Virus record (IMG/VR): IMGVR_UViG_3300036766_000194 | Span: 62,001-126,000 of that record | DNA: 64,000 nucleotides | Direction: 5' to 3' (one strand) | Part shown: in pieces, positions 1 through 33,334 of the stretch | Position numbering within the stretch: the stretch's first letter is position 1 | Layout of the letters: the number at the start of each line of letters is the position of its first letter | The notes under the pieces: model-generated | What the model saw: the letters and a program-made list of their open reading frames with translations, nothing else | What the model was told of the DNA's origin: nothing | Database searches by the model: none | Translations under genes and position numbers: made by a program

Positions 1-912
1 CGTAAGGAGGTAGGTGTAAATCCTCAAAACTGGTATAATTTTAAGAAAGAAAGGAAATTTGGACCAAGAATACCGCTTAGATATTTTCTAACCCATCGTC
101 GTAAATTACCAGCACCGCAAGGTTTATATTTTAGCCAAACTAGAGGCAAGGCTAGAGTGATTGGGAATCTGACTTTGCGGCTTAGTAATTGGGCCTATGT
201 TTTGGGATTCTTTTTAGGGGCTGGTTGGCTTAATAGGGATAGCCGAGGTGTTATTACGAGTGTCAGCTTTTCTGTGGATGCACCTCATTACAAAAAATTG
301 TGCACTGCCTTGGGAGCCATTAAAGAAACACCCCTGCGTATCCGAGAACGCTTCAGCACAGTTGCAATGGTTGAGATTGAGTGCGATAACAAATTCTTCG
401 CAGAAATTTTGGCTTACGTTTTCAAGGGGGCAAAGAAATGTTGGGAAAAAGAACTTCCTACAGAATGGACAACTACTTGGTCCAGGAAAGCTCGTGAACA
501 GCTATTGGAAGGACTTAGAGATTCAGACGGCGTAGCAGCTGGTTCTAATCCAACTACTAGTAGTGCCTATACAACCACTTCTCTGGCTTTAGCAAAATCA
601 ATTCTTCTCTTGCTGAGGAGTCTAGGTATATCGGGGAGTTACAGTGAACACTCTCCGAGTCTTGGGGGGTGGGTTAAGGAAAAGGACGGTTCATTACGTC
701 AGATACAAGGTAAAAGAATTTCCTACATAATTGGGTGGAGTGTTGGAACGGGTCATTGGGGTTCGGCTTTGCCCTATAAATCCCCCGAATTGTGGAATCA
801 AGCCCCAATACATAGGATTAAGGATGTCGTTCCGCCATCACATGTATACGATTTAGAAATGGAAGGTCATCCTTCTTTTTGCCTTGAAGGAATTGGTATG
901 CTAGGAAAAAAT
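1..912 (+). mobile_element. Intein with LAGLIDADG endonuclease (C-terminal part)
   Basis: LLEGLRDSDG LAGLIDADG-type motif; block F VYDLEM; ends GKN followed by +1 Ser of SATP. Confidence 0.8.
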
Positions 913-1917
913 TCCGCGACTCCAATTTACAACTATGGAGGAGAGATGTTTAACGTTCTAGATGTTCTCTATCCAGGTTGCCTAGGAACTTGGGATGAAT
1001 TTAGCCGCGAGTGGGTTGCTTATGCTTTTGGGGATAAACCCAAGATAAAGGATCCTAAAGCGTTTGGTGTTTATACTCGTGAAGCTGGACTCATGCTACG
1101 TCGGACCCGTATAGAGGTACGCCGCGAATTGCCTGAGGTTACGGTCGTCCCACACAGCATTGATTGTGACACGGCCATCCTTGACAAGATGAAGGGCAAG
1201 GCTATTGAGCTTGCCAAACTGATCCTTGCGCAGAAGCAAGATTTTCGTGGGCAAAAGATGCAAGCTGCTGGAGAATTTGATTTGCGTATGCGTCAAGCTA
1301 CAGGTATTGCCAAGGCTCCCTATGTTTGCGAATTTGTAAAATTCTTGATACAAGAGAGTAACGAACCTATTGTATTGTTCGGATGGCACAGGGAAGTTTA
1401 CGAGATCTATCTAGAAAAATTGAAAGAGTTTAATCCTGTGATGTATACAGGGAGTGAGACAGCTGTACAAAAGGAAGAGTCTAAGCAGAAATTTATCAAA
1501 GGTCAGAGTAAGGTTATGATAATCAGCCTCCGCTCTGGGGCGGGGCTGGATGGTTTACAGGATATTTGTCACATCGCGGTATTCGGAGAGTTAGACTGGT
1601 CAAATTCTGTTCATACTCAGTGTGTGGGTCGTATTCATAGAGATGGTCAGGATGAACCTGTCATCGCCTATTATTTGCTGAGTACTGATGGCTGTGATCC
1701 TATTATGTGCGATGTCTTAGGGATCAAACGGCAGCAATCTGAAGGCATATTAAATCCGTTAGGTGAGTTCGTAGGAGAAAACATAATACGGGAGCAGTAT
1801 ATAAGGGACCTAGCCGCCGATTTTTTGACGAAACAGGGAGTTGACGTTGAGAAGATTGAAAAACCCAAAGAAATCTCTGAAACACAAGTTTCCTCAGATA
1901 GCCCAGGAATGGCATGA
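1..1917 (+). CDS. SNF2-family helicase, 5'-truncated by the window edge, with an intein
   Basis: Frame open from nt 1. After the intein come SATP (motif III), IVLFGWH, SLRSGAGLDGLQ and QCVGRIHRDGQ (helicase C-terminal motifs). Confidence 0.9.
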   Translation, partial: RKEVGVNPQNWYNFKKERKFGPRIPLRYFLTHRRKLPAPQGLYFSQTRGKARVIGNLTLRLSNWAYVLGFFLGAGWLNRDSRGVITSVSFSVDAPHYKKLCTALGAIKETPLRIRERFSTVAMVEIECDNKFFAEILAYVFKGAKKCWEKELPTEWTTTWSRKAREQLLEGLRDSDGVAAGSNPTTSSAYTTTSLALAKSILLLLRSLGISGSYSEHSPSLGGWVKEKDGSLRQIQGKRISYIIGWSVGTGHWGSALPYKSPELWNQAPIHRIKDVVPPSHVYDLEMEGHPSFCLEGIGMLGKNSATPIYNYGGEMFNVLDVLYPGCLGTWDEFSREWVAYAFGDKPKIKDPKAFGVYTREAGLMLRRTRIEVRRELPEVTVVPHSIDCDTAILDKMKGKAIELAKLILAQKQDFRGQKMQAAGEFDLRMRQATGIAKAPYVCEFVKFLIQESNEPIVLFGWHREVYEIYLEKLKEFNPVMYTGSETAVQKEESKQKFIKGQSKVMIISLRSGAGLDGLQDICHIAVFGELDWSNSVHTQCVGRIHRDGQDEPVIAYYLLSTDGCDPIMCDVLGIKRQQSEGILNPLGEFVGENIIREQYIRDLAADFLTKQGVDVEKIEKPKEISETQVSSDSPGMA

Positions 1918-6234: not shown

Positions 6235-7872
6235 TCAGGCCCGCCATTTTCCTGCGTAAACAGTAACAATAGTTCTTTTCCCATTAGGATATGAGATTAT
6301 GTGAGAATGAGTCCAACTACTCGGACCATGATTGTAACCCATACGGAGATTGGTAGAAGTACCTGCTACATATAACCCCCCGGTTATTGTAGCACTATGG
6401 GTGTGAGCGGTGTTGGCTTTGCATCCCATCTTAGAAAGATTACTAGGTGTTCCTCTTGCTCCATCGGGACCCAAGTGTCCGTGCATACCGCATTCTACTT
6501 TCTTGTTACATATAGTGAAACTATCATCTCCCAACAAGAACTTTACTCCCTTAGTAGCATTGAAACGTTCCATAGCCCACCGGGTTAGATTGAAATTTTC
6601 ATTACGCCCTTCCAGTTGCTTATACACTTCGAATTGAGCCTCTAAGAATAGTAGAGCATTGCGGGGATCCGTGCGATAGTCGTGCTCACGCAACCAACGC
6701 ATAAACCAGTTATCGTGGTTTGAATCCACCACGACCGTTTCAACACCTGTACGACAATATTCTTTTAAACATTCTGCGGTATCTTTAAGCTCCTGGGTGA
6801 CTGCATCATACCCACGTAAGTAGGCTTTAAATTTCTCGTGAGGATTTTTTGCGTTGTGATGATTTACCGAAACTCCTTCAAGGAGGTCATGAATAAACTG
6901 ATAGCTAGGACGGAGACTATCCAGCATCCCTCCTTCACCAATAGACAGATTCTTTACAGTTGGATCTACAATGGTGGCGTGGATATCTCCCCAGGTGATC
7001 GCTTCAACACGGTTACCTGTGGTTACTTGTTCGTTTTCTACTACAACATCTAGATCTTGAATACGTCCGGTATTTTCGTCTGCTTCTAATTGACGTACCC
7101 ACCAATGACCGTTACTATCTACTTCTACTAGGACTCCTCCATAAGAATGACGATGCTCAGCTTTTAATCCTGCCTTCTTTTGTATGTAGTTACGCTTGGT
7201 GACGGTGCCTGTCGTGTACATTAGCTTTGTACCCCGACCTTGCATAGTAGCAACAGAGTCCATTTCCATCTTAGCATGGGGGAAGATACAAGACTTAGCT
7301 CCCGAATAAGTCGCCATACCCGAAAGAGGATTATTCTCCGTAGGGATAATGTTCATTTCTCCACACCAAACAAGTCCTTCTCCTAATTCTTTCCTACCAT
7401 CGTAAATGTATTTTTCAATAGCATCGTCATACCAGGCTTCTTTTTGTTTAACTTCTTCCGTTCCACGCTTCACAGCTAGAGGACCGTAAGCATTTTTATT
7501 ATAAGAGTAGGTTCCCACCAAAATTTCTGCTTCATAGTATCCAGCAAGAGCTAGAAGATTGTTTAAAACAGCATCGTGAACGAATGTGTTGTTTTGAGCG
7601 GAGGTAAGAATGTATCTTTTAACCGTGCCTAGAGCAGGTAACTTTAATGATTTGTGTACGATACCCCGGATAGTTCCGCCAGCAACTTTACGTGTGATCT
7701 TTCCTACGTGCTTTTTGATATTCCGATATACCGTGGAACGAGACATTCCTAGTTTACGGGCAACTTCGGCAGCGTTCCCGCCCAGTTTGTTATACAATTC
7801 TACTATTTGTTCTCTTTTGGCAAGGACTTCAGGTGGGACGGTAGGTTTCTGGTGCTTTTTGGCTTTACTCAA
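6235..7872 (-). CDS. HTH-fused calcineurin-like metallophosphoesterase
   Basis: N-terminal NAAEVARKLGMSRSTVYR HTH; WGDIH, HD, SNHD, MHGH and AHTH metal-binding motifs. Confidence 0.7.
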   Translation of the reverse strand: MSKAKKHQKPTVPPEVLAKREQIVELYNKLGGNAAEVARKLGMSRSTVYRNIKKHVGKITRKVAGGTIRGIVHKSLKLPALGTVKRYILTSAQNNTFVHDAVLNNLLALAGYYEAEILVGTYSYNKNAYGPLAVKRGTEEVKQKEAWYDDAIEKYIYDGRKELGEGLVWCGEMNIIPTENNPLSGMATYSGAKSCIFPHAKMEMDSVATMQGRGTKLMYTTGTVTKRNYIQKKAGLKAEHRHSYGGVLVEVDSNGHWWVRQLEADENTGRIQDLDVVVENEQVTTGNRVEAITWGDIHATIVDPTVKNLSIGEGGMLDSLRPSYQFIHDLLEGVSVNHHNAKNPHEKFKAYLRGYDAVTQELKDTAECLKEYCRTGVETVVVDSNHDNWFMRWLREHDYRTDPRNALLFLEAQFEVYKQLEGRNENFNLTRWAMERFNATKGVKFLLGDDSFTICNKKVECGMHGHLGPDGARGTPSNLSKMGCKANTAHTHSATITGGLYVAGTSTNLRMGYNHGPSSWTHSHIISYPNGKRTIVTVYAGKWRA

Positions 7873-7975: not shown

Positions 7976-9100
7976 ATGCCAGAAGAGAACAAGACTCGTA
8001 AGCGCATAAACTTTCAAGGAATTCCTATTGCCATAGAGTGGGAAAAGGGTTCCGAACGCAAGGGGGTAAACCCTGATGGTTCTGAATGGTCTAATCCTAT
8101 GTATGCGGATTACGGGTATATTATACCTTCTAAGAACTCTGTTCCTGTCATAGAAGAATTCTTCAAACACTATGAACGTGAAGTGGACTACTACAAAGAA
8201 GCTGCCGACATTGCTAGAGAAAAATTAGAAAATGCTTTACAGGCCGAAGGCATCCGAGCACAAGTAACCTGCCGGGCTAAGTCTCCTAAGCGTTTGCGTA
8301 AAAAATTATATCGTCGCTATCCAGAGAAACACTATAAGACGTTTCGTGACATATATAAGGACATAGTGGACTTAGCGGGAGTTCGCGTCGCTCTATATCT
8401 TCCCGCTGACCGTGATGTTGTAGGACATATTATAGGAACACTATTTGAAGAAACTCGCCCCGTTAAGCATTTCCCTACAGATAAAGGAACAGAAGATAGT
8501 GTGGGGTATATTGCTAATCATTATCTGGTGAGATTATCACCCGATACACTAAAGGGATCTGATCGTCGTTATGCCGAGACTAAAATAGAGATACAAGTGG
8601 CTTCTGTCCTCATGCACGCTTATGCTGAAATCTCACACGACCTCGTTTATAAGCCCGAAAAAGGAGAATTGTCTACTGAAGAAAAACTACTTCTTGAACA
8701 ATTGAATCAAATTGTTTTGGCTGGAGAAGTAGCTCTTACACGATTACAGAGTAAGATTGAAGGTAGGACCGATAAGGATCTCCGTTTTGAACTAGTTGGA
8801 AGTTGTATAAAGAAAGCATCTGGGGTTTTAGCGGCTAACGGTTGGTCCAAAGACGGAGAGAACATGGATGTTTACGTGGGAGATAATTATGAATCTCCTT
8901 ATGTCTATGCCATTGAACAGTTGAGAGATGGGCAATTTGATGAATACAAGTTTCTTTTGGGATTTGATTCTCTGGAGCAAGCTCGTGAAATCTACTTGAA
9001 ACACTTTCCGACTCAACCTAATTGGTGGGAAGAAAATGTAGAGGGGATTTATGAAGTTCCCCTGGAAGAGTTCCGTACTGCCGTGGATAATCATGCCTAA
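7976..9100 (+). CDS. Polyvalent-protein-type inorganic pyrophosphatase (InPase) domain split by an inserted RelA/SpoT synthetase domain
   Basis: InPase N-half IAIEWEKGSERKG..DG.EW...M.ADYGYI; synthetase motifs RAKS..RL.KKL, DLAGVR, GY.A.HY, EIQV, HAYAEISHDLVYK; InPase C-half KDGENMDVYVG...EQ...FDEYKFLLGF.S...A...YL.HF. Confidence 0.85.
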   Translation: MPEENKTRKRINFQGIPIAIEWEKGSERKGVNPDGSEWSNPMYADYGYIIPSKNSVPVIEEFFKHYEREVDYYKEAADIAREKLENALQAEGIRAQVTCRAKSPKRLRKKLYRRYPEKHYKTFRDIYKDIVDLAGVRVALYLPADRDVVGHIIGTLFEETRPVKHFPTDKGTEDSVGYIANHYLVRLSPDTLKGSDRRYAETKIEIQVASVLMHAYAEISHDLVYKPEKGELSTEEKLLLEQLNQIVLAGEVALTRLQSKIEGRTDKDLRFELVGSCIKKASGVLAANGWSKDGENMDVYVGDNYESPYVYAIEQLRDGQFDEYKFLLGFDSLEQAREIYLKHFPTQPNWWEENVEGIYEVPLEEFRTAVDNHA

Positions 9101-12100
9101 TAAATGGAATCATGCTTCTACTCAGATTAACTTACCTCCTGATGTAGCTGAACAGGTACTTACTGCTGGGAAAAATGTTCCTGAAGAAATACTATCTCTC
9201 AATGGACGGGATGATAATCCTCATATAAGTTTAAAATACGGGGTGGAGGAGAATGAAGAACTTCTTCGTGAAGCTGTTAAGGGTATTTTTCCTTTCACAG
9301 TTACACTGGGAAAGACTAAGACTTTCTTAGCTCGTGATCCTTACGCTGGAACTCCCCTAGTTGTAGAAGCAGCTGCTCCTGAACTTGCTAAACTTAACAA
9401 GTTGATTGATAAAGCAATAGGGAATAAGCCTGAAGATTTTTCCTTTGAACCTCATGTCACTCTTGCCTATATAGAAGAGAAACATTCTGCGGAATATGTA
9501 GGAAAAGATTGGCTAGCCGGGGTTACGTTTACGGTAGATTCTATTGTTCTTTCTAAGATGAACGGAGAACAAGTTAGCATTCCTTTAGAGACAAAACCGG
9601 AAGAAGAATTCCGTCGCCACGTACCTACTCACTTCAGTTCTCGTTTACTTACAGCTAAACTGCCTGATGTGGATATGAAGCGTTTCAAACGGATTATTGA
9701 ACCTCTCAGACCGCGTTTAATAGGAAAAGATGATGATGAAATTGCCGAAATCCTTAATGAAACACATGAAGATACCGGAGTGTCATACCATCTAAGTACC
9801 CAAGAATCTGGTCACAGCGAATGGGCGCAGAATTATCTTAGCGGCGCGTTTTACGTTGTGGGTCAAGGTGATATTGTTGTCATGTTAGAATATGGTATAG
9901 GAAATTTATTCGAGAATATCACTGAAGAAAAGTGGGGTTATTTTGTAAGTGTGTTGTCTTCTTTAGTTGTGCACGAAGTCACTCATGACTCTCAATTCGC
10001 AGCTATTTTTCACAAATACAAGGGACAGTCCGAACCTATGGAACGCGCTCTTAAAACTATGGAAAGCGGACCCGAACAAGGTAGGGCTGTTTACTTTTCT
10101 AATCTTCATGAGCTAGCTGCCTTTGCCCGCCAAGCAGTAGAAGAATTACGCGAGACACACTACACGGATGAGGATATTTCCAACTTATTGAGGGACTCTA
10201 AGGTCCAGAAAGACGCTATAGGTGATTCTCATGTATTCTACCTTTATTGGGATTTTTTTGGACCAGGAGATCCCATCTATAAGAAGTTCCTTTATCAGAT
10301 GGCAAAGGTCATAGGAACCACCCATGTAGCTTCGGATGAAAGCGCATATCAAGCTGCTGCGGATAAGTTCCATATTGATTATAAAGGAGTTGCCAAAGAT
10401 TATACGACTCCTAGCAATGCTCTAATTATGTACAACGATCCGGTGAGCGGGACTTCCATTGGGGTGTTCGTAGCAGAATTCAGTGAAGATAAAGTTAAAG
10501 AGCATTTGAACGCTGCTCGTCAACGATTTAATTTACCCAAAGTTTCTGGTGATACTATCTCCACTTCACAATTGGAATGTGGTTGGTGTAAAAAGGTTAT
10601 CCGCGAAGGTACCCAACCAGCCAGTCATACTATTTGTCCCGAGTGTCATAAGAAATATTTCCCAGAGACTCTAAAGAAGACTTCCACAAAAATGTATAGT
10701 GGAGGTCGCCCTGGTAGCGGACCGGGTAAAATTGTGACATATTTTACACCAAATAAACAGATGGCTGAGAGCTATGTTTCTCTGTATAATGATCGTTTTG
10801 GTGGAGGTGGAGAATTGAGGGAGGCGGATGTCAATCTTATTAAACCTGCCCCCTATGAAGTTATTGAAGCTGAAGCTAAGAAATTGGGAATTGATAACAC
10901 CCATTACACACCCGCTAGCATTTTTGATAGGAATCTCCACGGCGAGAAAATGGTAGGTACATTAGTAAAGAATCTAAAGGATCAGGGATATGATGGTACT
11001 ATTCTTGATGACATTGGTTATGGCGTAGAGATTCAGGATAAAGCCTTCATTAAGTTTTCCTATAACAAACTCTCTCCTAACCAACCGGGGAAGAAATACG
11101 TTGAAGAAACAAACGGATGGGCGGATCAGAATGAACAGTCTCGTGAAGGCGATGAGGCTTACCCAGAACTTGAAACCTTAGCTCCAGAATTATTTAAGGA
11201 ATCTGCCGTTACATCTCCTCTCAACGCTGTTCAGAATTCTGTAAATAAATTTATGACAGAATTCTGGCCTGATCTTCCTAAGCCTAAAATCAAGATTATA
11301 AATCACACGGTCCCTGTAAGTTTAGGAAATTGTCTTTGGACTTCTAAAGATCCTGATACTTCGATTATAGAGATAGAAAAAGCTGTATGTGGTCACCAAG
11401 AAACACTGGATCGTATTGTAGCTCATGAACTTTGTCATCACGCAGAATACATAAATGAAATCCGTAAGATTCCTACTGACCAAATCAAGATTATGAATCG
11501 GTTACACGGCGATCATGGAAAATGGTGGAAAGCGGAAGCCGACAAAGTAAACAACATATATGGACAGAGCTATGTTACGGTGAAGTCTGACCAAAGTATG
11601 GTTCAGGAACAAGACAAAGAATTTTATGTTCTCCTTAAATCTAGTCCTTATGGGATTATTTGGTGCTATGCCGTTCGTCCTTCTTTAAAGCAAAAATTAT
11701 ACATAAATCATCAGATTCCTCAGGGAGCTAAACTCGTTAAAACTAAAGACATAAGTCTTGCTAGAAATCCTGGTGGAACTATTGGTAGCGGGTGGAGAAG
11801 ACCGGGTACTAAGGAAATGGCAGAAAAACTTTCTACTCTTTGGAATGAAGTTCCCTCTGTAAAGGTATATTCCTTACATAATCCTCTATTTAAGAACGCC
11901 GCAACTGACGTCATTGGACAAGTTTACCTATTACACTTCAATGAACCTTTCAAGCATGCTAGACACTATCTAGGGTGGGCACTGGACGCGGATAGAAGGA
12001 TAGAGCAGCACCGTAACGGAGTCGGCTCACGACTCACCCAAGTCATAAAAGAGAATGAGATAGGCTTCGAGGTTGCTAGAATCTGGGATAATGCTACCCG

Positions 12101-15100
12101 AGGATTTGAGCGTAATCTGAAGAATCAGGGTGGACTTAATCGTCAATGTCCAGTTTGTAGGGCGTTAGGAATGGACTCCCGTAAAAAATGGAAGGAACGT
12201 CAAGAAGAGATTCAAGTTGCTCCTCCGTCAGGTACCTATGGTCCCGACTATGTTCAAACTAGTAAGACTGCTTGTCTTGCTATGACTAAGAGTGCAGGGG
12301 TTGAACCAAGAATTACAACGCAAAAGAGTAGTGTGGATAATGAAGGACATGTACACTACGAAATTAGCATGGTTGACGAGAACGGGGATGATCTTGGATT
12401 CTTAAAGGTCATCGCCAAACCCAAGGGATCTCCAGGAGGAGATTACGAAGAACCGCATTTGAAGATTCACGAGATTTTTGTAGAAGAACATTCTCGCCGT
12501 AGAGGATATGGCACATTGTTATATCAAGCAGCACGGAATCTGGCACGACAGCTTGGCCTGCCAAATGTTTATTCAGACACTACTATCTCAGATGAAGCTC
12601 GTTTGGTTTGGGAAAATAAACTACCCGCAAAACGTTTTAAAGATAATAGAGGAACACCTATTCGTTACCGTATGAAGGCTTCCTCAAATGAATTCTACCA
12701 CGTCACTCGATATGAAAATGCGGCTAATATCTTGGAGCATAATTATTTCCGAACAACAACGGGACAAAATGTAAGAGGATTGTCTACGACAAAAGATCCT
12801 AACTACTGGTGGGGTAGTAAAGAAGTTCGTTTTGTTTTAGACAAACAAAAGCTGTCTGAAAAATACGAATTAAAAAGTGAAAACGAGACCATCTATACCG
12901 AAGGATCTCTTCTTAATGAAAACGAAGTTGTGGTGTTATTTGATTCTGCTATCTTGAATGCTAGAGATTACATCCTTAGAGTGGACTACTTTGAAGCTCC
13001 AGGGGAGCCAGAGTATGAAGACTTTATTTCACAATTGAAAGATGTAAAGTCTAGAAAAATTGGAAATGCTAAATTTGCTGCTTTGTCTACAGCCGAAAAG
13101 AAAATGGTTGATGATCAGAAACTATCTCAGGAATTCACCAAAAAGATTATTGAAATATTAGAAAACCTTCTTAAGAATTACAAATACACCTATCCTGAGG
13201 ATTGGGATAGACTAATTGTCAAAGAACTCAGGAAGAAATTGAATATTTCGGAACAAATTGCTTGGGATTTGGATGATATATTGACTGTTGCTTCATATCT
13301 GGATATATATTCTTACTTTACTGATAAGGGATTACAACTGGCTGGAATTGATCCCAAACTCGTAAAGAAACCAAAACGAGAAATTGAAGAAAGCAGCATG
13401 GGTGATCTTGAAGAGGAAGATAAGAAACTTTTAAAGATGACTTTTCATTCAGAACTTCTTCCCGTGAAGTATTTGTTGCACGGAACGTCTGACAAATTCA
13501 TAGCTGACATTAGAAAAAACGGATTACATGGTAAGAAAATTTATCTCACCACGACGTCAGAAATTGCTACCTCCGAAGCTGAGTATACTGTTGAGGGAGA
13601 TCCTTTTTCAGAAGGAAAGAATTGGGGTCAAATTTCTGGAGGAAAACCCATAGTAATTGTGATTGACCCTAAGAAGATTAAGTTGTCTCTTCGTCCTGAT
13701 CCTGAATATCTTGCTTCCATGAAGGAAGAGGGAGAGATTCCTTATGCTTTCTATACTCGACAGACTGTTCCTCCTTCTGCCATAATTAAGATTGTTTCTC
13801 TTGAGAATGCTGAAAAATATGGAGTGGACAAGAAACCTCCCACCTTAGAGATGATGAAGACCGCCGCTATAGGCTTAGAACAACTCAAACACGATTTTGA
13901 TAAGCGTCCTGCTCAGTTAGTGACAAAACAGGAAGTTTTAGATACGACATTTATCTTACCCGATGGAACTTCCCTAGGATTCTACGATCATCCAGAACGT
14001 GACCAAATCGTAGACGAGAAGAATATACAATTTAAAGATTTTTGTATCCGCACAGGGACTATCTGGTCTAAACGCAGGGAAGACATCTTTCATATATATA
14101 AGCGTCCTAATGATGCTCAGATGGATAGATTACATAAGATGTTTCAACTCAATGGAAGTCAACTGGGTTGGATTATTAACCGGGGTCCTGCTGCTCAAGA
14201 GATAAAGAAAGTTAAAAAGGGAGTTTGGAATAAATTTCTCCGTGAATTGGATATAGTGTATCAGACTGAGGACCGTAAGAAGAAATCATCTAGTAGTAAT
14301 GATTTTAGTGATTTAGTTGATCTTCATACTCAAATTCATAAACACCCGGCTAGAAGTGAGGACCATACTCCTAGTCATGCCCAATGGAGTAATTATGTTA
14401 AACAGTTAGAAAATTTCTATACTAGATTGAAATTGACAGGGGATGAATACTGTGACTGTAAAGAATTTCCTACAATGGGAATGTTTCGAAAAACTCATCC
14501 TCTGGTTACGGTTAAAAGTAATTTAGATAGATTAACCGATGAAGTAGACCACACCTATTCTGAAACAGCCCTTATGGGAATGCATTCATTTCTAACTCAT
14601 TTACAAGATAAACATAAAGACCGTGAGAAGACCAGCGCGTCCTCTTCATTTGATTCTTGGTTCATAGGTTCCAAAGTTGTAGACGCTCAAGGCAAACCCA
14701 TCATTTGTTATCACGGAACAAGCCAACCCTTTTCTCGAATAAACATGGGCAAAGGTTCGCAAGGAGTTTTCTGGGTCACATCAGATCGTTCCAAGATTGA
14801 GCGCGGCGGGGCTGGAGCCAGTTCCAACAAGCACATTCTAGGAATGTATGTCAACATCAAGAAGCCCGCTGGGTGGGATGAATACGAACGTCTTTCTTTA
14901 GGAGAACTGAAGCGTGACTATGATGGGGTTATTCTCCCCGAGGGAGATCATTTTGATGCCATTGTTTTTAAGCCTAACCAAGTCCGGATGGTAAAATCCG
15001 CTGCTACAGATCCTGATGCTTGGAATGAGGAACCTGAGTCTCTTCCTAAGGGAAAAGTAACAGGAGACATGATTAGAAAAGGTGCTTGGTTTCTACTGCC

Positions 15101-15773
15101 TGACGGTACCTGGTTTGGTGTCAGGGCAAGTGAGGCAGAGCACTCCTGGATAGAACACTTAGTCCCGGAAGGTTCCATACGTGTACCAAATGAAATGGTT
15201 TATGATATTTCTAGAAAACCCACAGAAGACCAGAAGCAGGAGATAGCAAGATTAGTGAATCAATCCTCTAGTTTAGTTATGTATTGGGACATTTATAAAG
15301 ATGGAGGGGAATATTCTGGTCAGGGTTCCTTAGGAGATTTTCTACGTTTCTTGAGTAAGATTTATGGTAAAACAGCCTCCTCATCCGAATTAAAACAGAA
15401 TCTTATGCGGTGGCGGGGTAATATCGCGGCCCGTGCTCAAAAAGTCTATGATGAATGGACCCAAAATGAAGAAGGAATAGATACCGAATATGGTGGTGGC
15501 GGACCCTGTGATGCTATAGCAGAACAGATACAAGATTTACTAGAAAGTCTAGGGGTCAACACGATGAGCGGGGGGCAAGAAGGTGACGATCATGCCTGGA
15601 TTATCGCCTATAATTACAAAACTGGTGAAGCCTGTGGAGTGGACATTCCTCATAGTGTATACGAAACTGGAGGGGGCTACTCCTGGAAGAAGATTCCTAA
15701 CGTAGTTTTCACCCCGAATGATGTAGAGATATGGCCCGTAGACATTAAGGACATAGAATATGAAGATCAGTAA
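9093..15773 (+). CDS. Giant polyvalent protein (~2226 aa): 2H phosphoesterase, zincin peptidases, GIY-YIG, GNAT and several ADP-ribosyltransferase-like domains
   Basis: HISL/HVTL (2H); HEVTH and HELCH (zincin/SprT); VYLLHF..PFKHARHYLG (GIY-YIG); RRRGYGTLLY (GNAT); FYHVT..STT, LLHGT..IYLT and CYHGT..FWVT (ART-like). ATG at 9093 overlaps the upstream stop. Confidence 0.85.
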   Translation: MPNKWNHASTQINLPPDVAEQVLTAGKNVPEEILSLNGRDDNPHISLKYGVEENEELLREAVKGIFPFTVTLGKTKTFLARDPYAGTPLVVEAAAPELAKLNKLIDKAIGNKPEDFSFEPHVTLAYIEEKHSAEYVGKDWLAGVTFTVDSIVLSKMNGEQVSIPLETKPEEEFRRHVPTHFSSRLLTAKLPDVDMKRFKRIIEPLRPRLIGKDDDEIAEILNETHEDTGVSYHLSTQESGHSEWAQNYLSGAFYVVGQGDIVVMLEYGIGNLFENITEEKWGYFVSVLSSLVVHEVTHDSQFAAIFHKYKGQSEPMERALKTMESGPEQGRAVYFSNLHELAAFARQAVEELRETHYTDEDISNLLRDSKVQKDAIGDSHVFYLYWDFFGPGDPIYKKFLYQMAKVIGTTHVASDESAYQAAADKFHIDYKGVAKDYTTPSNALIMYNDPVSGTSIGVFVAEFSEDKVKEHLNAARQRFNLPKVSGDTISTSQLECGWCKKVIREGTQPASHTICPECHKKYFPETLKKTSTKMYSGGRPGSGPGKIVTYFTPNKQMAESYVSLYNDRFGGGGELREADVNLIKPAPYEVIEAEAKKLGIDNTHYTPASIFDRNLHGEKMVGTLVKNLKDQGYDGTILDDIGYGVEIQDKAFIKFSYNKLSPNQPGKKYVEETNGWADQNEQSREGDEAYPELETLAPELFKESAVTSPLNAVQNSVNKFMTEFWPDLPKPKIKIINHTVPVSLGNCLWTSKDPDTSIIEIEKAVCGHQETLDRIVAHELCHHAEYINEIRKIPTDQIKIMNRLHGDHGKWWKAEADKVNNIYGQSYVTVKSDQSMVQEQDKEFYVLLKSSPYGIIWCYAVRPSLKQKLYINHQIPQGAKLVKTKDISLARNPGGTIGSGWRRPGTKEMAEKLSTLWNEVPSVKVYSLHNPLFKNAATDVIGQVYLLHFNEPFKHARHYLGWALDADRRIEQHRNGVGSRLTQVIKENEIGFEVARIWDNATRGFERNLKNQGGLNRQCPVCRALGMDSRKKWKERQEEIQVAPPSGTYGPDYVQTSKTACLAMTKSAGVEPRITTQKSSVDNEGHVHYEISMVDENGDDLGFLKVIAKPKGSPGGDYEEPHLKIHEIFVEEHSRRRGYGTLLYQAARNLARQLGLPNVYSDTTISDEARLVWENKLPAKRFKDNRGTPIRYRMKASSNEFYHVTRYENAANILEHNYFRTTTGQNVRGLSTTKDPNYWWGSKEVRFVLDKQKLSEKYELKSENETIYTEGSLLNENEVVVLFDSAILNARDYILRVDYFEAPGEPEYEDFISQLKDVKSRKIGNAKFAALSTAEKKMVDDQKLSQEFTKKIIEILENLLKNYKYTYPEDWDRLIVKELRKKLNISEQIAWDLDDILTVASYLDIYSYFTDKGLQLAGIDPKLVKKPKREIEESSMGDLEEEDKKLLKMTFHSELLPVKYLLHGTSDKFIADIRKNGLHGKKIYLTTTSEIATSEAEYTVEGDPFSEGKNWGQISGGKPIVIVIDPKKIKLSLRPDPEYLASMKEEGEIPYAFYTRQTVPPSAIIKIVSLENAEKYGVDKKPPTLEMMKTAAIGLEQLKHDFDKRPAQLVTKQEVLDTTFILPDGTSLGFYDHPERDQIVDEKNIQFKDFCIRTGTIWSKRREDIFHIYKRPNDAQMDRLHKMFQLNGSQLGWIINRGPAAQEIKKVKKGVWNKFLRELDIVYQTEDRKKKSSSSNDFSDLVDLHTQIHKHPARSEDHTPSHAQWSNYVKQLENFYTRLKLTGDEYCDCKEFPTMGMFRKTHPLVTVKSNLDRLTDEVDHTYSETALMGMHSFLTHLQDKHKDREKTSASSSFDSWFIGSKVVDAQGKPIICYHGTSQPFSRINMGKGSQGVFWVTSDRSKIERGGAGASSNKHILGMYVNIKKPAGWDEYERLSLGELKRDYDGVILPEGDHFDAIVFKPNQVRMVKSAATDPDAWNEEPESLPKGKVTGDMIRKGAWFLLPDGTWFGVRASEAEHSWIEHLVPEGSIRVPNEMVYDISRKPTEDQKQEIARLVNQSSSLVMYWDIYKDGGEYSGQGSLGDFLRFLSKIYGKTASSSELKQNLMRWRGNIAARAQKVYDEWTQNEEGIDTEYGGGGPCDAIAEQIQDLLESLGVNTMSGGQEGDDHAWIIAYNYKTGEACGVDIPHSVYETGGGYSWKKIPNVVFTPNDVEIWPVDIKDIEYEDQ

Positions 15774-19854: not shown

Positions 19855-20133
19855 TTATTCTGTCTCTCGGTGATTAGGATAATTGGGATAGCGATTCTTC
19901 AGGGCCCAAACGTACATCCAGCCAGCAACACATCCAATAGACAGATGAGCTAGACCCATTTTCAAATAGTGTTGGAGTTCTTCTGTCTCCATAGGACCTT
20001 CATTAGTCATGATGAAGAGTAAATTTAAGAATCCAGACAGCAGGCAGAATACAGACAAACTTAGAGTAATAAATCGTTGGATTTGAAAATTGAGAACGTC
20101 AACAACGGATTTGAACCTCTTCCATCTACTCAT
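19855..20133 (-). CDS. Small membrane protein
   Basis: Two hydrophobic segments; overlaps the upstream stop. Confidence 0.55.
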   Translation of the reverse strand: MSRWKRFKSVVDVLNFQIQRFITLSLSVFCLLSGFLNLLFIMTNEGPMETEELQHYLKMGLAHLSIGCVAGWMYVWALKNRYPNYPNHRETE

Positions 20134-21151
20134 CCCAATGATTCCATTCTATGCGACTACGCATCCAATGTCCGTGCGTTTGTACGTGATCTTTTCGAAC
20201 ATACTTGCCCACTCGGGTAGAAAATTCTTTTAAGTGAAATGACCCCGCAGGCCGCACAACGTAACCTTCCCACTTGTCAGAATTGAGGGAATATTGTTCT
20301 AGTATTTCGGGTGAAAAGTCTTCCCATTTCTTTCCATACCATCTTACCGGAACGGTTTGTAGACCGAGGAGTCCCGCATAATCTACTGTATCTTTCCAAG
20401 GGAGACAAGTCAAACCGTCCCAAATACTGAATACAAGAAAGAACGAAGGCAAATTCGAATAATATATGCTATGTTTGGCGGTAAGATTTTCACCACAAAT
20501 ACGCCAATTATTAGGAATGTCATGAGCAATACTAGCATGTAATGCTTTGACACGATCTCTTGATGAGTGCGCTTCATAATCCAGAGACCGAGCATGCATA
20601 TAGTCCCTGTACATGGTGGTATTTTCACCGTCCATTTTTTCGGTGACAACTACTTCGGTACCATTCCAGGTGTCTAAGATTTCTTCAGACAATTCTCGGT
20701 CGTCTTCCTTCATTCCGGGGGACCAAGGAAAATGCCAAGTACGAGGATATTTTACACGATTAAGAAACAAATGTCGTACAGGTTCAAGAACTTTCTGCAC
20801 AGATTCATCGTCATAAAGTTCTCCCTTCAAGCGTAAGCCATTTGTTAAGACAGGGTTGCCCCACTTGTCATAGGGCTGGTCCGGATAAAGATGTGGGGGT
20901 AGAATGGTGTTTTTAATTCCAGCTACGGCGCGAATTTCATCGGTTGCTAAGTCTGTTGCTTCAGCTGCTAGATGACATTTGCCACAGAGAGTTGCTCCGT
21001 TTTCAGAGTAATATCCCCCATCAGGGAATAGTCTACGTTCCATAATATGATGAGCATCTTGCCCCGGCTGGCCGCAAACCACACATTTGTGATTATCCCT
21101 CGCGAAGACTCCTTCGCGGAACTGATCACGTGTTAGGAGGCCTAATCCCAT
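20126..21151 (-). CDS. HNH nuclease-RNA ligase fusion
   Basis: RD.HKCVVC...AHHI....NGATLC..CH (HNH); KYPRT.H.PWSPG, TEKMDGEN (motif I), GEN and EGYVVR (ligase). Confidence 0.85.
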   Translation of the reverse strand: MGLGLLTRDQFREGVFARDNHKCVVCGQPGQDAHHIMERRLFPDGGYYSENGATLCGKCHLAAEATDLATDEIRAVAGIKNTILPPHLYPDQPYDKWGNPVLTNGLRLKGELYDDESVQKVLEPVRHLFLNRVKYPRTWHFPWSPGMKEDDRELSEEILDTWNGTEVVVTEKMDGENTTMYRDYMHARSLDYEAHSSRDRVKALHASIAHDIPNNWRICGENLTAKHSIYYSNLPSFFLVFSIWDGLTCLPWKDTVDYAGLLGLQTVPVRWYGKKWEDFSPEILEQYSLNSDKWEGYVVRPAGSFHLKEFSTRVGKYVRKDHVQTHGHWMRSRIEWNHWDE

Positions 21152-26231: not shown

Positions 26232-27383
26232 TTACTCTTCAGACTCACGATTACGCCGAACCTTGATAAGTTCAATGGCTTCGATGTAGCGGTCTACGGT
26301 GGTCTGGCGCAGGCTGTTGGAACGTTCGGCTGCCCATACTGCCTTGTAACTCAGATCCAGTTCCTCAGAGATTTCTTTGAGGCTGATGCCTGCCTGTTCG
26401 CGAATCACGCGGAGCGTGTTCTGGAACAGTTTAGACTGTTCAGCCGGGGAAAGCGGATGAGGGAGACGATTCCAAAACTTGGCAAGTTGCCCATAGTTCC
26501 ATTTGCGGATGCTCTTGTCACGCCACTTACCACGATAGATGGCACGCTTCACGGTCTTGTGGTTAAGGATGTTTTCCAGGAGCGTCTTGCGCTCCTTGGC
26601 AACCGGAACCACACTGACCAGCATGGACGGATGATCCAGACTTCCGTCAAAACCATTACGGTTGTCTGAGATTTCCTTGACTACTTCGTAACGCCAAGTG
26701 CGACCCTTAGCAAAGTTGTAGTCCGGAGGAATGCTCACGACGTCCTTGGGGTTAATCTTAACCTGCATCAACCGCCCCCCGCTACCATACGTGCTGCTCA
26801 GGTAGCTCACTGAACAAAAATGGAACCCCCGCGAACAGGTTTCTTGACGATTAGAGTCAACATCCGAACGTTTCATTACCAGGACTTGACCGGGGCTGTT
26901 GTCGAACTTGCTCGTGTGGCAATCGGTGTAATCCTGATTGACCATCTTATAGGCCATAAAACAGCCATCATCCGTGATAGGAAGATCGTTCTTGCTTAGG
27001 AAGTCAAAGAGTTCACTGATAGCCTGGTCACTCGGGTTGCTGTAGAGGTTATCCATGAACTTGAGCATATAGTCCATTGGATAATTTTCCTTGAGCATAT
27101 AGGTGATGCGGCGGGTCAAACTGCTGTCAACCTCGCGGCTCTTGTAATAGACTCCCCCGCGATTGACGGTAACAGCGCCGTGACTCTTGTTAGAGACCAC
27201 TGCCGCTATGGTGACCAAATGGGGAACCTTACTCCAACGCTTGGCAATCAGGGCCGAACGCAGTTCTTCAAACGTGGGATGGGTCTCGTTCAAACTGAAC
27301 GGGCGACCGTCCACCACCAAGCTGATATAGGTATCGTTCACCGTGAAGGGATAGGGTGCTTTCTTTGTTTTGGTTGCGCTCAT
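26232..27383 (-). CDS. rIIB: rIIB-like protein with C-terminal XRE-type HTH
   Basis: ELFDFL....LPITDDG.F.AYK, DN.PGQ...M.R..VD....TCS.GFH; C-terminal LR.IRE.AGISLKEISEEL.LS...V..AE. Confidence 0.85.
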   Translation of the reverse strand: MSATKTKKAPYPFTVNDTYISLVVDGRPFSLNETHPTFEELRSALIAKRWSKVPHLVTIAAVVSNKSHGAVTVNRGGVYYKSREVDSSLTRRITYMLKENYPMDYMLKFMDNLYSNPSDQAISELFDFLSKNDLPITDDGCFMAYKMVNQDYTDCHTSKFDNSPGQVLVMKRSDVDSNRQETCSRGFHFCSVSYLSSTYGSGGRLMQVKINPKDVVSIPPDYNFAKGRTWRYEVVKEISDNRNGFDGSLDHPSMLVSVVPVAKERKTLLENILNHKTVKRAIYRGKWRDKSIRKWNYGQLAKFWNRLPHPLSPAEQSKLFQNTLRVIREQAGISLKEISEELDLSYKAVWAAERSNSLRQTTVDRYIEAIELIKVRRNRESEE

Positions 27384-29674
27384 GACTGGACCGTCTCCTC
27401 TACGGTCGTAATTCTGATGTTGCTGTTGTTCTCATGTTCATCCATGTTTTTTACATATTCCAGTAGCTTCTCACTCATTCTACTGTTGTGACTATAATAA
27501 GAGTTAAAACTTAGGGTAAGAATAGGGTAATGAGTGTTAACCATCTCATTCCACAAGGCAGAAAAATCTATAGCGTGTTCCACTTTGAATTTTCCTGCCT
27601 GTTTTGCTACGCTCACAACTTCCCACAAATACTCCCCCTCATCACTCCCGTCCTGTTTATTCCACAGAGTTACAAACTGGAACATAGGACTGTTCAAATC
27701 CAGAGTATTTTTCTTGTTAGCATAATCCAAGAAATCTTCAAAATCGTTGTTGAACAGCTTGACCCTGTGGCTGAGTTTCATCTGTTTTTCCGCCGTCATG
27801 ACAATGGGGATCCTCTTCAAAATCTGAGGGATAAGTTCCGTCCACTGACCGTCGCCCATCTTCGGCAACTTTGTACCCTTCTTAATACCGTAAACCGGAG
27901 TATGTTGGGTAAGACCGAAAGCCTTGCTACCCCGGACGACTGAAATGTAGTCCACGAAAGCAGACCCGTTATAAAAAGGAATTTCAGCCACCGGGCAAAG
28001 AGTAGTGAAGTTCTCCACCCACACAAAGTACTTCTCTCCGGAGGGAAGTTCGCTAGAGAAGATTTTCTTCCAAGTCCTGCTCCAGCCTTTACCATATTGA
28101 GAGCGACCGTTGCCGCTCATGACTAAAAGTCCCCGGCGCGGTCCAGTAGCTTGGCCCGGCATACGTTCGTCAAGTTCGGGGTACTTTGCCTTGAGTTCAG
28201 ACATCTTGATGATCGGAACGCCACACATCTTGAGGTAGATGGCTTCAAATTCCTTCATCATATCTTCATGAGAAGAGTTTTTGTCATAGCGGCTGAACAA
28301 GTATACTTTCTTGAACCGATTCACACCACCGTCATCACCCTGGATGAACTGATGAAGATATTTCTCTCCACCAAACTTGATGTCATTGACAACGAAGGCA
28401 ACAGTGGGTTGTACGCTAAACTCTATGTCGTACTTCGTCAAAATGCTCGTGTTCTGGAGGGCCTCCACCTCAATACGCTCACGAACGTCGGGAGCACGCT
28501 TGGTGAAAAGGTTATGCTTCGTGGCCCACTTGGTTCCGCCGCTCTTGGAGAAAACGGAAAGCATCGTGTGGTGATAGTCCAACTCGTTTATGAAGGGAAG
28601 GTCTTTTTCTAAAGTAAAGTTGGAGTACTTCTTGTAGATTTTGCCCTCGTTAATAGCTGACTGAACCACCCCCTGTGTGGATCCGTCCGCCAGCATACTG
28701 AAAATCAAGAGTCGTGCTTCCCACTCCGTTTTGCAGTTTTCAATACGTTCCACGATTTCTTCCATCATCCGGGAGTAAATAGTGGTGAGTTCGGTAAGGA
28801 TAGCATCAATAGTAGTCTCGTCGTTACTGAGCATTTCACGCGATGCGGCAACGGACAATGAACCGATAGGAAAGAAAATGTCCAGAGGTTTTTCACTCAG
28901 TTTACGTTGTTCAGAGGACAGACGGCTGATGTCAAGGTTACCGACAGAGTATTGAACCACACCCATAATAGCGCGGATGCCGCTCGTATGGTGGGTGGGA
29001 GCCAGAGCACGCATACCCCAGCGGTCGGTCTTGATGGAGTAGTTTTGCTGCCGAACTTCAAATCCTTTAACATTAATGTTGGGAAGCGGGTTGAAGAACT
29101 CCAAAGCCACCCGAGCCATGTTCTCAAATTCCCAGCAATCCTGTGACTTGACTGGGAACTGAACTTCGAGACCGTTAACTTCATCGGTCTTATGGCTAGA
29201 CAAACGCTTGACGGAAGGTGTACCGTCGTTCTCAATGTAGGCGGAATAGATGTACTTCTTCCCGTTCCAAAAGGTGGTAACGGTAAAACCATCGGTGTAG
29301 CAAAACGGGGACTTAGACCCCAGACCCATTGCGCCAATCATGGTGTTGTCGTTGTTCTTTGTTGAGGAAAAATAGGTACAATACAAAGTTTCAATCTCTT
29401 CCGGAGCCAGACCAATACCATAGTCTCGGATAGCGAACCAGGGTTCAAAACTCGTGGGCAGGTGAAGGTCGAACGGAACCTCAGCCTTGCCCGCCGCGAT
29501 ATGGGCGTCATAGGCATTACAAGAGAGTTCCCGAACGATAGCGAGAGGTTTGTTGTTATACAGCTTGGAAGACAAAACAGCGAACGCCGCTCCAGAGGCT
29601 TGAATCTGGAACTTTTTAGGGGCGGAATTCGTTCCGCCCGAAATCATGGGTGAGCCTTTGCGAGCGATTTTCAT
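27380..29674 (-). CDS. rIIA: rIIA-like protein (GHKL/HATPase N-terminus)
   Basis: LY.NKPLAIVREL.CNA.DAH, IRDYGIGL, STK, GLGSKSPF.Y and S.SRE.LS; adjacent to rIIB. Confidence 0.88.
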   Translation of the reverse strand: MKIARKGSPMISGGTNSAPKKFQIQASGAAFAVLSSKLYNNKPLAIVRELSCNAYDAHIAAGKAEVPFDLHLPTSFEPWFAIRDYGIGLAPEEIETLYCTYFSSTKNNDNTMIGAMGLGSKSPFCYTDGFTVTTFWNGKKYIYSAYIENDGTPSVKRLSSHKTDEVNGLEVQFPVKSQDCWEFENMARVALEFFNPLPNINVKGFEVRQQNYSIKTDRWGMRALAPTHHTSGIRAIMGVVQYSVGNLDISRLSSEQRKLSEKPLDIFFPIGSLSVAASREMLSNDETTIDAILTELTTIYSRMMEEIVERIENCKTEWEARLLIFSMLADGSTQGVVQSAINEGKIYKKYSNFTLEKDLPFINELDYHHTMLSVFSKSGGTKWATKHNLFTKRAPDVRERIEVEALQNTSILTKYDIEFSVQPTVAFVVNDIKFGGEKYLHQFIQGDDGGVNRFKKVYLFSRYDKNSSHEDMMKEFEAIYLKMCGVPIIKMSELKAKYPELDERMPGQATGPRRGLLVMSGNGRSQYGKGWSRTWKKIFSSELPSGEKYFVWVENFTTLCPVAEIPFYNGSAFVDYISVVRGSKAFGLTQHTPVYGIKKGTKLPKMGDGQWTELIPQILKRIPIVMTAEKQMKLSHRVKLFNNDFEDFLDYANKKNTLDLNSPMFQFVTLWNKQDGSDEGEYLWEVVSVAKQAGKFKVEHAIDFSALWNEMVNTHYPILTLSFNSYYSHNSRMSEKLLEYVKNMDEHENNSNIRITTVEETVQS

Positions 29675-32488: not shown

Positions 32489-33334
32489 AAAACTCTCACC
32501 CTCATGATTGGCGAAAGCGGTTCTGGAAAATCTACCATTGCCAAGACCATGCTTGATCGTTATACTCTTCGCGTCAATCGGGATAGTATTCGCAAGATGC
32601 TCTTTGAGACTTGGAACGCCCGGTACGAAAAGATTGTTGAAAAGCTCGAATTTGAGGCGGCAGGGCAGGCGTTAGACGCTGGATTCAATGTCATTGTGGA
32701 TGACCTGAATATCAATTCCAGGACTCGTCAACAGTGGGAAGAGTTTGCCAAGAAAAAGGGAGCAGAGTTCTGTAAATATGAAGTGAATGTCTCCCTTGAC
32801 GAGTGCGTTCGTCGTGATAGCCACCGTGAGGGTAGGGACCGTGTGGGTCGGTCTGTAATCACCAAGCAATTCATCCGTAACGAACGTCCTGAAGTGTTTA
32901 AAAACACCCCTACAGTTTTGGTGGATGTTGACGGTACTCTGGCAGATTGTGAAGGCGTGCGTTCCCCCTATGACGAGTCCCGCGTGGGCGAGGACAAGGT
33001 CCATTGGAACATCGCGAGGATGGTTTGCGAGGAGTCTCGTGAGAATCAAATTATCATCGTTTCTGGCCGTCACGAAGACTGTGGTCCGGACACTGAGGAC
33101 TGGTTGCTCCATAAGGCCAGAGTTCCTTTCCAGGGATTGCTCATGCGTAACCGGGGCGACTTCCTCTCCAGCGACGTCATCGTTAAGGAAAAACTCCTCG
33201 CCATGATATTGAAGTATGTGGACAAGGCGAACATCCGGTTGGTCATTGATGACAGACCCCGCGTAATTCGATTTTGGAGAAGTGTTGGTTTGACCGTTTT
33301 TGCGGCTAGGGGTGAGGATCTTGAAGATTTTTAA
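32486..33334 (+). CDS. pseT: Polynucleotide 5'-kinase/3'-phosphatase (T4 PseT-like)
   Basis: GESGSGKST, VNRDSIR, DVDGTLA (HAD), VSGR and IDDRP. Confidence 0.92.
   Translation: MKTLTLMIGESGSGKSTIAKTMLDRYTLRVNRDSIRKMLFETWNARYEKIVEKLEFEAAGQALDAGFNVIVDDLNINSRTRQQWEEFAKKKGAEFCKYEVNVSLDECVRRDSHREGRDRVGRSVITKQFIRNERPEVFKNTPTVLVDVDGTLADCEGVRSPYDESRVGEDKVHWNIARMVCEESRENQIIIVSGRHEDCGPDTEDWLLHKARVPFQGLLMRNRGDFLSSDVIVKEKLLAMILKYVDKANIRLVIDDRPRVIRFWRSVGLTVFAARGEDLEDF

Follow-up and report, generated by a model that had tools for sequence, protein, structure and literature searches.

Introduction

In RelA/SpoT-type synthetases a 3'-OH receives the beta and gamma phosphates of ATP as pyrophosphate, and what is released is AMP rather than free pyrophosphate (PPi). 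Here we describe a phage gene in which a small alarmone synthetase (SAS) of this type is inserted into InPase (PF18823), a phage-type family-I pyrophosphatase (PPase) domain, so that host and guest domain form one polypeptide. The gene occupies positions 7976 to 9100 of a 64,000-nucleotide stretch, hereafter the window, which covers positions 62,001 to 126,000 of IMG/VR virus record IMGVR_UViG_3300036766_000194, a genome of 299,875 bp. This host-guest insertion had been proposed in an earlier reading of the window (the original prediction), and the split matches of the protein to the InPase profile bear it out.

The SAS module can be compared with several described synthetases. RelQ and RelP (PDB 2be3, 5dec/5ded, 6ewz and 6fgk) share its fold, and their ATP-binding basic residues, DxxGxR motif, G-loop Tyr/His, EIQ and HxxxYK are also found in the window SAS. 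However, it is only 18-23% identical to them, has EIQVAS for EIQIRT and GYxAxHY for GYRSxH, and, unlike RelQ and RelP, is phage-encoded and embedded in another domain. CapRel and other toxSAS (PDB 7ztb) likewise carry SAS and a second domain on one polypeptide, but the window protein matches CapRel at a profile E value of only 0.03, lacks its pseudo-ZFD antitoxin domain, and has no small adjacent open reading frame (ORF) in which we saw antitoxin features.

MuF-Apk2 and Tas1, (p)ppApp toxins with Aph1 immunity, place a phage RSH-type pyrophosphokinase on a virion-linked module, to which the window protein can be likened (PMC10083569, PMC12226406). The phage genome, too, contains a gene for an Aph1-like hydrolase. 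However, the adenosine-type Apk2 signatures (syn2 RYT, syn3 GxN, syn4 YH) are absent from the window SAS, which has GVR, AxH and VA; the carrier is InPase rather than MuF or PAAR; the hydrolase lies 47 kb off and not adjacent; and the neighbouring genes encode an A1-like protein and a polyvalent protein.

InPase is known from polyvalent, portal and minor-head proteins of phages (Iyer et al. 2017, PMC5512222; portal gp19, PDB 9b41), which share with the window protein the domain family, its conserved residues and a virion-associated or polyvalent phage context. There the domain is contiguous, and none is reported with an inserted domain or a RelA/SpoT fusion in the portion of the text of Iyer et al. 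considered here. The authors argue for packaging and delivery of the InPase and RelA/SpoT domains that polyvalent proteins carry, and propose for InPase either a nucleotide-like substrate or the clearance of PPi (PMC5512222).

Results

An SAS module interrupts the InPase domain

The gene is built as follows.

7976..9100, plus strand: whole gene, 374 aa, InPase (N-half)-SAS-InPase (C-half), in a single frame with no internal stop
7985..8122, plus strand: InPase N-half, aa 4-49, five predicted strands, YGYI at its end; 49.2 bits to PF18823 alone
8123..8140, plus strand: junction 1 linker, aa 50-55, IPSKNS; predicted local distance difference test score (pLDDT) from AlphaFold2 (AF2) below 50 at aa 52-55
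8141..8830, plus strand: complete SAS module, aa 56-285; 40.7 bits to RelA_SpoT (PF04607), with the Pfam core at aa 100-228 (nt 8273-8659)
8846..9082, plus strand: InPase C-half, aa 291-369, opening with the metal-binding D-G-E-N-M-D-V-Y-V-G; 61.2 bits to PF18823 alone

On the full-length protein, Pfam matched InPase in two stretches (102.8 bits; cut-off 26.8) and RelA_SpoT over its core (39.2 bits; cut-off 27). Each piece also matched by itself: aa 1-51 aligned to InPase profile positions 7-52 (E 6e-13), aa 286-374 to positions 57-133 (E 1e-16), and the middle 234 aa to RelA_SpoT (E 3e-10). The cut in InPase is clean, since profile positions 53-56 alone are absent. In the translated ORF, YGYI falls at aa 46-49 (nt 8111-8122) and KDGENMDVYVG at aa 292-302 (nt 8849-8881), and the SAS motifs RAKS (aa 100-103), DLAGVR (aa 132-137), GYIANHY (aa 177-183) and EIQV (aa 205-208) stand between them. 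The original prediction had placed the cut between these two InPase motifs with the SAS motifs intact, and both the translation and the Pfam matches of the whole and the pieces agree with it, each half passing the InPase cut-off alone.

An alignment of 38 intact InPase domains gave the consensus run YGYIP-x-T-x-AAG-D-x-E-x-x-DVYIG, which is the PPase signature that carries the metal-binding aspartates. In the nested proteins SAS sits between YGYI(I/L)P and (T)AAG...D-x-E-x-x-DVYVG, and the 'IP' of junction 1 continues the canonical YGYIP motif. When the insert was deleted in silico, the halves aligned to intact InPase domains with only 3 extra loop residues. The window protein and three of its nested relatives keep every column that is invariant in the 38 intact domains. 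At columns at least 90% conserved in the intact domains, differences are confined to one loop Thr, for which two of these four proteins, the window protein among them, have Ala or Lys. The active-site motifs YG.IP...D.[DE]..D, EQ and FDE.K are retained in the window protein; no domain of the InPase clade is known to have been assayed. The profile of intact domains matched the InPase domain of portal protein 9b41 (E 1e-41), a solved structure to which the window C-half also aligns, and matched canonical family-I PPases weakly (E 0.17-1.6), on the YGYIP...DVYIG motif only. Judged by these residues and by those of the SAS module described below, both enzymes look catalytically intact. Antisense ORFs across the gene are short and without support, and its GC content is uniform with that of its neighbours.

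The AF2 model of the window protein, built on an alignment deep for the N-half and SAS, had a mean pLDDT of 81.8, with low confidence at the N-terminus and the two junction linkers only. Strands were placed in the N-half at residues 10-13, 16-22, 27-31, 37-41 and 46-49 (block-mean pLDDT 69-88), and in the C-half the block-mean pLDDT was 84-86 over aa 301-340. The model of a homolog with an uninterrupted InPase (P0018; pLDDT 86.4) gives the intact order of five strands, then strand, strand, strand, helix, short helix, strand, helix. The window N-half plus C-half have an identical order in the AF2 models, a comparison of element order only. This suggests that the two InPase halves may re-form one domain, with SAS hanging from its loop. 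Foldseek of the nested model against the PDB gave SAS matches only in the best 50 rows, the method being order-dependent and not able to bridge the insert of ~240 aa.

The nesting recurs and is under purifying selection

Every source of the nested form is a metagenome assembly, and no isolate carries it, so we asked how well the nesting withstands an explanation as an assembly or gene-calling artefact. The same junctions occur on 7 contigs from NCBI, JGI and IMG/VR that represent at least 6 samples and whose segments are 57-86% identical in amino acids (relatives P0002-P0005 and P0259; contigs L001, L014 and L015 from NCBI and L002, L003 and L013 from JGI), and the window protein is identical to a public-collection entry. 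Precomputed Pfam matches follow the order InPase, RelA_SpoT, InPase, always in one open frame. Among pairs of nested genes synonymous sites are saturated (proportion of synonymous differences, pS, 0.7-0.97), and the proportion of nonsynonymous differences (pN) is 0.09-0.32 over the three parts: 0.09-0.18 in the N-half, 0.09-0.20 in SAS, and 0.12-0.32 in the C-half against a pS of 0.74-0.97. The junction linker (aa 50-57; pN 0.17-0.56) is the sole relaxed, least constrained segment. All three parts are thus under purifying selection. Because the nesting recurs with saturated pS and low pN, we exclude the assembly chimera that had been a concern of the original prediction, and we regard an artefact of any kind as next to impossible.

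Three of the nested relatives (P0003, P0004 and P0259, on L003, L013 and L014) have an N-terminal extension of 150-200 aa without a Pfam match that the window protein does not have. L001 holds the same sequence as L014, called there from an internal GTG.

The nested form is a rearrangement of a family of linear fusions

A homolog search gave ~2000 matches. The 261 proteins retrieved comprise 100 linear proteins, 151 with SAS only, 5-6 nested ones, and 2 that combine SAS with a degenerate InPase C-half; a library at 50% identity holds two nested representatives and ~16 linear ones, with most others SAS-only. Linear proteins (such as P0013, P0018 and P0072, labelled 'ppGpp synthetase/RelA/SpoT-type nucleotidyltransferase' by JGI) have both domains of the window protein in another layout: a whole, contiguous InPase comes first, a linker joins it to SAS, and a tail of variable length (40-250 aa) follows. 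They are 50-62% identical to it in SAS and ~43-44% in each InPase half, and their genes lie, as in the window, between an A1-like gene and a polyvalent protein. In the window protein, by comparison, the InPase C-half has moved behind SAS, and linker and tail are gone.

BLAST segments are collinear with this rearrangement. Window aa 13-49 correspond to linear aa ~17-53, window aa ~283-364 to linear aa ~51-131, and window aa 58-280 to the linear SAS. The SAS of linear and SAS-only homologs starts at their residue 1-6, which corresponds to window aa 56-58. In a tree of 98 SAS domains (IQ-TREE quick search, rooted by taking the SAS-only rows as outgroup), bacterial SAS-only rows split from all fused rows (support 96), and all nested proteins group in a single clade (99). 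Its sister (87) is the main linear clade (96), and another linear clade branches outside these two. Mean identity to linear InPases is 43% for the N-half and 44% for the C-half, an equal distance that gives no sign of separate origins; trees of the half-domains are too short for placement and show only that both halves behave alike. Taken together, these sequence comparisons indicate that the nested form probably arose once, from an ancestral linear form. We also asked whether the C-half had been captured from an InPase encoded at the 5' end of the polyvalent gene that follows, and rejected this: no InPase is annotated in those neighbours.

None of the linear tails and linkers, the N-terminal extensions of P0003 and P0004, or the C-terminal domain of the bacterial SAS-only proteins gave a Pfam match, and the tail of P0013 showed no similarity to the C-terminal domain of the SAS-only protein P0103.

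How new is this architecture? A search of 50,697 phage records at the DNA level gave no near match; tblastn against GenBank phages found InPase or SAS separately and no match spanning both; and Foldseek of a linear model against the viral structures of BFVD found separate InPase and SAS proteins and no clear protein with both. Our literature search met with no account of InPase fused to RelA/SpoT in either the linear or the nested form, although one drawn in the figures of Iyer et al. 2017 would escape such a search. The supposition that the nested architecture was undescribed therefore stands as far as the literature goes, but the pairing of the two domains is not unique to it, as the linear fusion is frequent on contigs of huge phages. 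Each domain, like its use in phage polyvalent proteins, is already known, and it is the fusion family that is apparently undescribed. We give this family greater weight than the nesting, which is a rare rearrangement within it.

The SAS module is closest to RelQ and RelP

Foldseek placed RelQ and RelP at the top of the matches to the AF2 model (E 3.5e-9, TM-score by target 0.78-0.83), and block-mean pLDDT was ~90 over most of SAS. A profile of the SAS family matched the RelQ-like structure 2be3 best in the PDB (4e-11), followed by RelP and RelQ (to 2e-6) and, far below, CapRel; Tas1 was not matched at E of 1 or less in this search. Columns invariant among 52-60 family members are, in window numbering, R100, K102, K110, R114, D129, D132, G135, R137, Y178, H182, Q207, E218, H221, Y225 and K226, with E205 at least 90% conserved. 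They include the ATP-binding Arg/Lys cluster, the Asp of DxxGxR, the G-loop Tyr/His, Glu-x-Gln and HxxxYK. By sequence and predicted fold, then, RelQ and RelP are the nearest relatives of the module, and its catalytic residues are kept.

The syn motifs that are contrasted between guanosine- and adenosine-type synthetases are mixed. In guanosine-type enzymes syn2 is AVR, syn3 SxH and syn4 IR (PMC12226406). The window protein has a guanosine-type-like syn2 (GVR), a syn3 near SxH (AxH), and VA at syn4 (EIQVAS). Motif swaps do not convert specificity, and the motifs alone do not set it (PMC12226406). PADLOC gave a marginal PDC-S33 match only (12.6 bits), and NCBIfam and ESM Atlas gave nothing past 'RelA/SpoT'.

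Among cellular proteins the nearest relatives are SAS-only; they are ~420 aa long, have an unrelated domain at the C-terminus and are scattered through many phyla, the best being in Acidobacteriaceae (52% identity). They occur sporadically (L016-L095) in Acidobacteriota, Pseudomonas, Burkholderia, Clostridia, Actinomycetota, Bacteroidota and others, a multi-phylum spread that can be likened to that of toxSAS, and they may form an undescribed SAS subfamily. One of them, P0103, has an RNELVH motif (Rx4H, HEPN-like) in its C-terminal domain.

Phage SAS modules travel with a phosphohydrolase

In phages, SAS is nearly always found with a phosphohydrolase: an intact InPase in linear proteins, a split but conserved InPase in nested ones, and a HAD-type enzyme in two lineages. 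In one of these, P0091 (L096 8001..9416) combines SAS, HAD_PNKP and a degenerate InPase C-half at the same locus. In the other, P0126 (L097 68..1246) has SAS, a degenerate InPase C-half and a probable HAD-like segment, recognised by its DxDG motif only. Both variants lie at or close to the InPase/SAS locus. The remnant in both is a C-half without the catalytic Asp residues, the N-half is absent, and the order of the extra pieces differs. Since SAS nearly always travels with a phosphohydrolase, a functional linkage seems likely, in which the partner would process or limit a phosphorylated product. The original prediction had the insertion couple pyrophosphotransfer to PPi handling. This is chemically doubtful because the SAS reaction yields AMP and no PPi, and we do not retain it.

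The InPase parts might instead be non-enzymatic, a structural, targeting or packaging module (for portal or capsid association, or oligomerisation) that leaves SAS as the only catalyst. The domain is fused to a portal protein in PDB 9b41 and to proteins annotated as 'minor head', it is joined to the unrelated GP88 at an equivalent locus of another phage, and the P0091 and P0126 remnants have been kept despite lacking catalytic Asp residues and an N-half. However, the nested proteins hold every invariant residue (D-x-E-x-x-D, EQ, FDE.K) despite synonymous saturation, which a purely structural role would not require, and the decay seen in P0091 and P0126 has not touched the nested form. We therefore consider a non-enzymatic InPase unlikely.

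The GP88 fusion is gp272 of the cultured Tunturiibacter phage Tunturi_5 (308 kb; L009 1300..2637), annotated 'minor head protein', in which InPase is joined to GP88 (PF17338); the gene lies directly upstream of one for a giant NUDIX protein. By analogy, it and the portal-fused InPase fit a capsid-associated module, and genes of the form 'InPase plus variable effector' ahead of polyvalent genes may be a general pattern.

A further alternative is that InPase, or HAD elsewhere, is a built-in antidote that degrades the SAS product, giving a self-limiting protein with the logic of a fused toxin and antitoxin. Hydrolases that confer immunity, Aph1 and SAH among them, are the usual companions of alarmone toxins (PMC10083569, PMC12226406). 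The InPase/SAS gene has no immunity gene adjacent to it, and a phosphohydrolase accompanies phage SAS even where its type changes. Yet a permanently fused antagonist would create a futile cycle, and a separate Aph1-like hydrolase is already present in the genome. In addition, we know of no family-I PPase that hydrolyses (p)ppNpp. On balance an antidote role is improbable.

The gene adjoins a polyvalent gene in a huge phage

The neighbours of the gene, and two further genes that bear on the nature of the element, are these.

9093..15773, plus strand: downstream polyvalent protein, 2226 aa from the ATG at 9093, with Pfam 2_5_RNA_ligase2 (2H), SprT-like, GNAT and ART-PolyVal
6235..7872, minus strand: divergent upstream gene, 545 aa, T5 A1-like 'DNA transfer protein' (phrog_1745, E 1e-176), with helix-turn-helix families at aa 18-55
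26232..27383, minus strand: rIIB-like gene (PHROG E 4e-75)
27380..29674, minus strand: rIIA-like gene (PHROG E 8e-119)

The SprT-like match of the 2226-aa protein scores 24.0 bits, just below the 25.6-bit cut-off; the protein is polyvalent in the sense that Iyer et al. 2017 (PMC5512222) give the term, for phage proteins or operons in which several conflict enzymes (InPase, RelA/SpoT, 2H, ART, MPTase) are combined and whose delivery at infection is predicted. The InPase/SAS protein itself has two conflict domains in one polypeptide and abuts this 2H/SprT/GNAT/ART-PolyVal protein. Its stop overlaps the polyvalent start by 8 nt (ATGCCTAA), and we saw no terminator-like site between the two genes. 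Because the gene lies directly upstream of, and overlaps, the polyvalent gene, an early or co-delivered effector role is plausible by analogy with such proteins. A programmed frameshift into the polyvalent ORF was considered and rejected; there is no evidence for it, and ATGCCTAA is an ordinary stop-start overlap.

The same surroundings are found elsewhere. A divergent gene of ~420-550 aa stands at the same position beside linear homologs and P0091, a polyvalent-type neighbour lies downstream of both nested and linear homologs, and in the nested relatives an ORF of >1000 aa comes next and overlaps their stop. Both neighbours recur beside the linear genes P0013, P0072 and P0106, on contigs of 463, 894 and 130 kb. 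Since the locus neighbours agree, the nested gene is a positional ortholog of the linear gene. The contigs of linear homologs are phage-like and span 130-894 kb, several others among them being >100-450 kb. The window also encodes rIIA/rIIB, RNA ligases, an NAD-dependent DNA ligase and a CCA-adding enzyme, and because of these genes and a locus shared with huge-phage contigs, we take the element to be a huge phage. The rIIB- and rIIA-like genes confirm its T4-like or jumbo phage character.

The phage-like contig L005 (JGI 3300035696, Ga0374055_0000025, 894,233 bp) carries a linear InPase-SAS gene and a polyvalent protein of 3651 aa. It exceeds every phage genome known to us; the element may truly be of this size, or the contig may be a concatemer or mis-assembly.

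LAGLIDADG endonuclease domains occur in three window ORFs, and these look like inteins or homing-endonuclease insertions.

157..1917, plus strand: helicase ORF with a LAGLIDADG endonuclease domain
33300..35660, plus strand: RNA ligase ORF with a LAGLIDADG endonuclease domain
38454..42563, plus strand: SNF2 helicase ORF with a LAGLIDADG endonuclease domain

An Aph1-like hydrolase and RNA-repair genes share the genome

Further genes of the window concern alarmone hydrolysis and the repair of RNA.

56195..56701, plus strand: HD-domain small alarmone hydrolase, Aph1-like (HD_4 35.7 bits)
53329..54567, plus strand: CCA-adding tRNA nucleotidyltransferase
20126..21151, minus strand: RNA ligase
33300..35660, plus strand: RNA ligase (the LAGLIDADG-bearing ORF)
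56756..58837, plus strand: NAD-dependent DNA ligase

The hydrolase matched Aph1, a (p)ppApp-specific hydrolase, best in the PDB (7SMG; 5.8e-19, 72 bits over both stretches), and the hydrolase domains of SpoT and Rel at up to ~46 bits. Of the six Aph signature residues (PMC10083569), D24, R96, R119 and Y134 are identical, K133 is replaced conservatively by Arg, and D116 by Leu. Its gene lies 1.6 kb from the CCA-adding enzyme and directly upstream of the DNA ligase, and similar HD genes are found in many phages that have no SAS of the InPase/SAS type. From sequence, the hydrolase hints that adenosine 3'-pyrophosphates matter to the phage. It could be a partner of SAS or, equally, a counter-measure against host toxSAS or (p)ppApp toxins. 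The RNA/tRNA-repair set suggests a defence against host toxins that damage tRNA 3' ends.

These genes raise the question of whether SAS, instead of making alarmones, could be a tRNA 3'-CCA pyrophosphokinase of the toxSAS type, like CapRel, FaRel2 and PhRel2. EIQVAS lacks the Arg that alarmone synthetases have at syn4, the partner in P0091 is a PNKP-type 3'-phosphatase, of a class that acts on nucleic-acid 3' ends, and a CCA-adding enzyme, RNA ligases and an adenosine-3'-pyrophosphate-type hydrolase are encoded in the same genome. However, the SAS profile is far closer to RelQ and RelP than to CapRel, and a phage that disabled tRNA would harm its own translation. Thus, we find activity on tRNA distinctly unlikely.

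Discussion

Our best overall explanation, to which we give a probability of about 0.6, is that the window gene is a nested positional ortholog of the linear fusion, with an InPase that would reassemble from its halves, and encodes an early effector in which InPase processes the product of SAS. The two halves would re-form one domain with SAS projecting from its loop. The protein would act early in infection, possibly delivered with the virion alongside the polyvalent protein. SAS would use ATP to 3'-pyrophosphorylate a nucleotide, with (p)ppGpp-type chemistry if it follows its nearest relatives, or perhaps (p)ppApp, and the product would reprogram or shut down host metabolism. Rather than clearing PPi, the InPase partner would process a pyrophosphate-bearing molecule tied to the SAS reaction, for example by trimming the 3'- or 5'-polyphosphate of the alarmone, or would limit its level. 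Selection for a phosphohydrolase partner is suggested because a HAD-type phosphatase accompanies SAS in the two lineages whose InPase is degenerate.

Several observations weigh against this explanation. The predicted TM-score of the AF2 model is only 0.58 and the C-half alignment comprised 5 sequences; contact between the InPase halves is putative. The node that joins the nested and main linear clades has only 87% support in the Shimodaira-Hasegawa-like approximate likelihood-ratio test (SH-aLRT), from a quick search with outgroup-dependent rooting. At syn4, 'VA' agrees neither with guanosine 3'-pyrophosphokinases, which have 'IR', nor with Apk2, which has 'YH'. The bacterial relatives, 45-52% identical in SAS, are solitary chromosomal genes, and the C-half retained without catalytic residues in P0091 and P0126 hints at a non-catalytic role for that piece. 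Finally, packaging, injection, expression timing and toxicity are what we infer from context, by analogy with described phage effectors.

Could InPase and SAS together do more than make and limit an alarmone? They might form a two-step machine that makes a non-canonical nucleotide, for instance one that is 3'-pyrophosphorylated and then trimmed to a 3'-phosphate or to a shortened 5' form. We consider this a long shot. If it were true, the molecule would resist host SpoT and SAH hydrolases and so serve as a phage-specific signal or poison; nesting would bring the active sites together, and HAD-type phosphatases would substitute for InPase in other lineages.

What does the effector explanation mean for huge phages? 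The InPase-SAS family comprises at least 100 non-redundant proteins in ~16 clusters at 50% identity, at a fixed locus by a giant polyvalent protein. While taking over the host, huge phages with InPase-SAS may therefore produce 3'-pyrophosphorylated nucleotides and perhaps edit them. The nested variant is a natural experiment in which a 235-aa enzyme has been placed in the signature loop of a family-I PPase and retained under selection. It would be a good system in which to study the physical coupling of two activities, and may offer a first handle on the substrate that InPase-clade domains hydrolyse.

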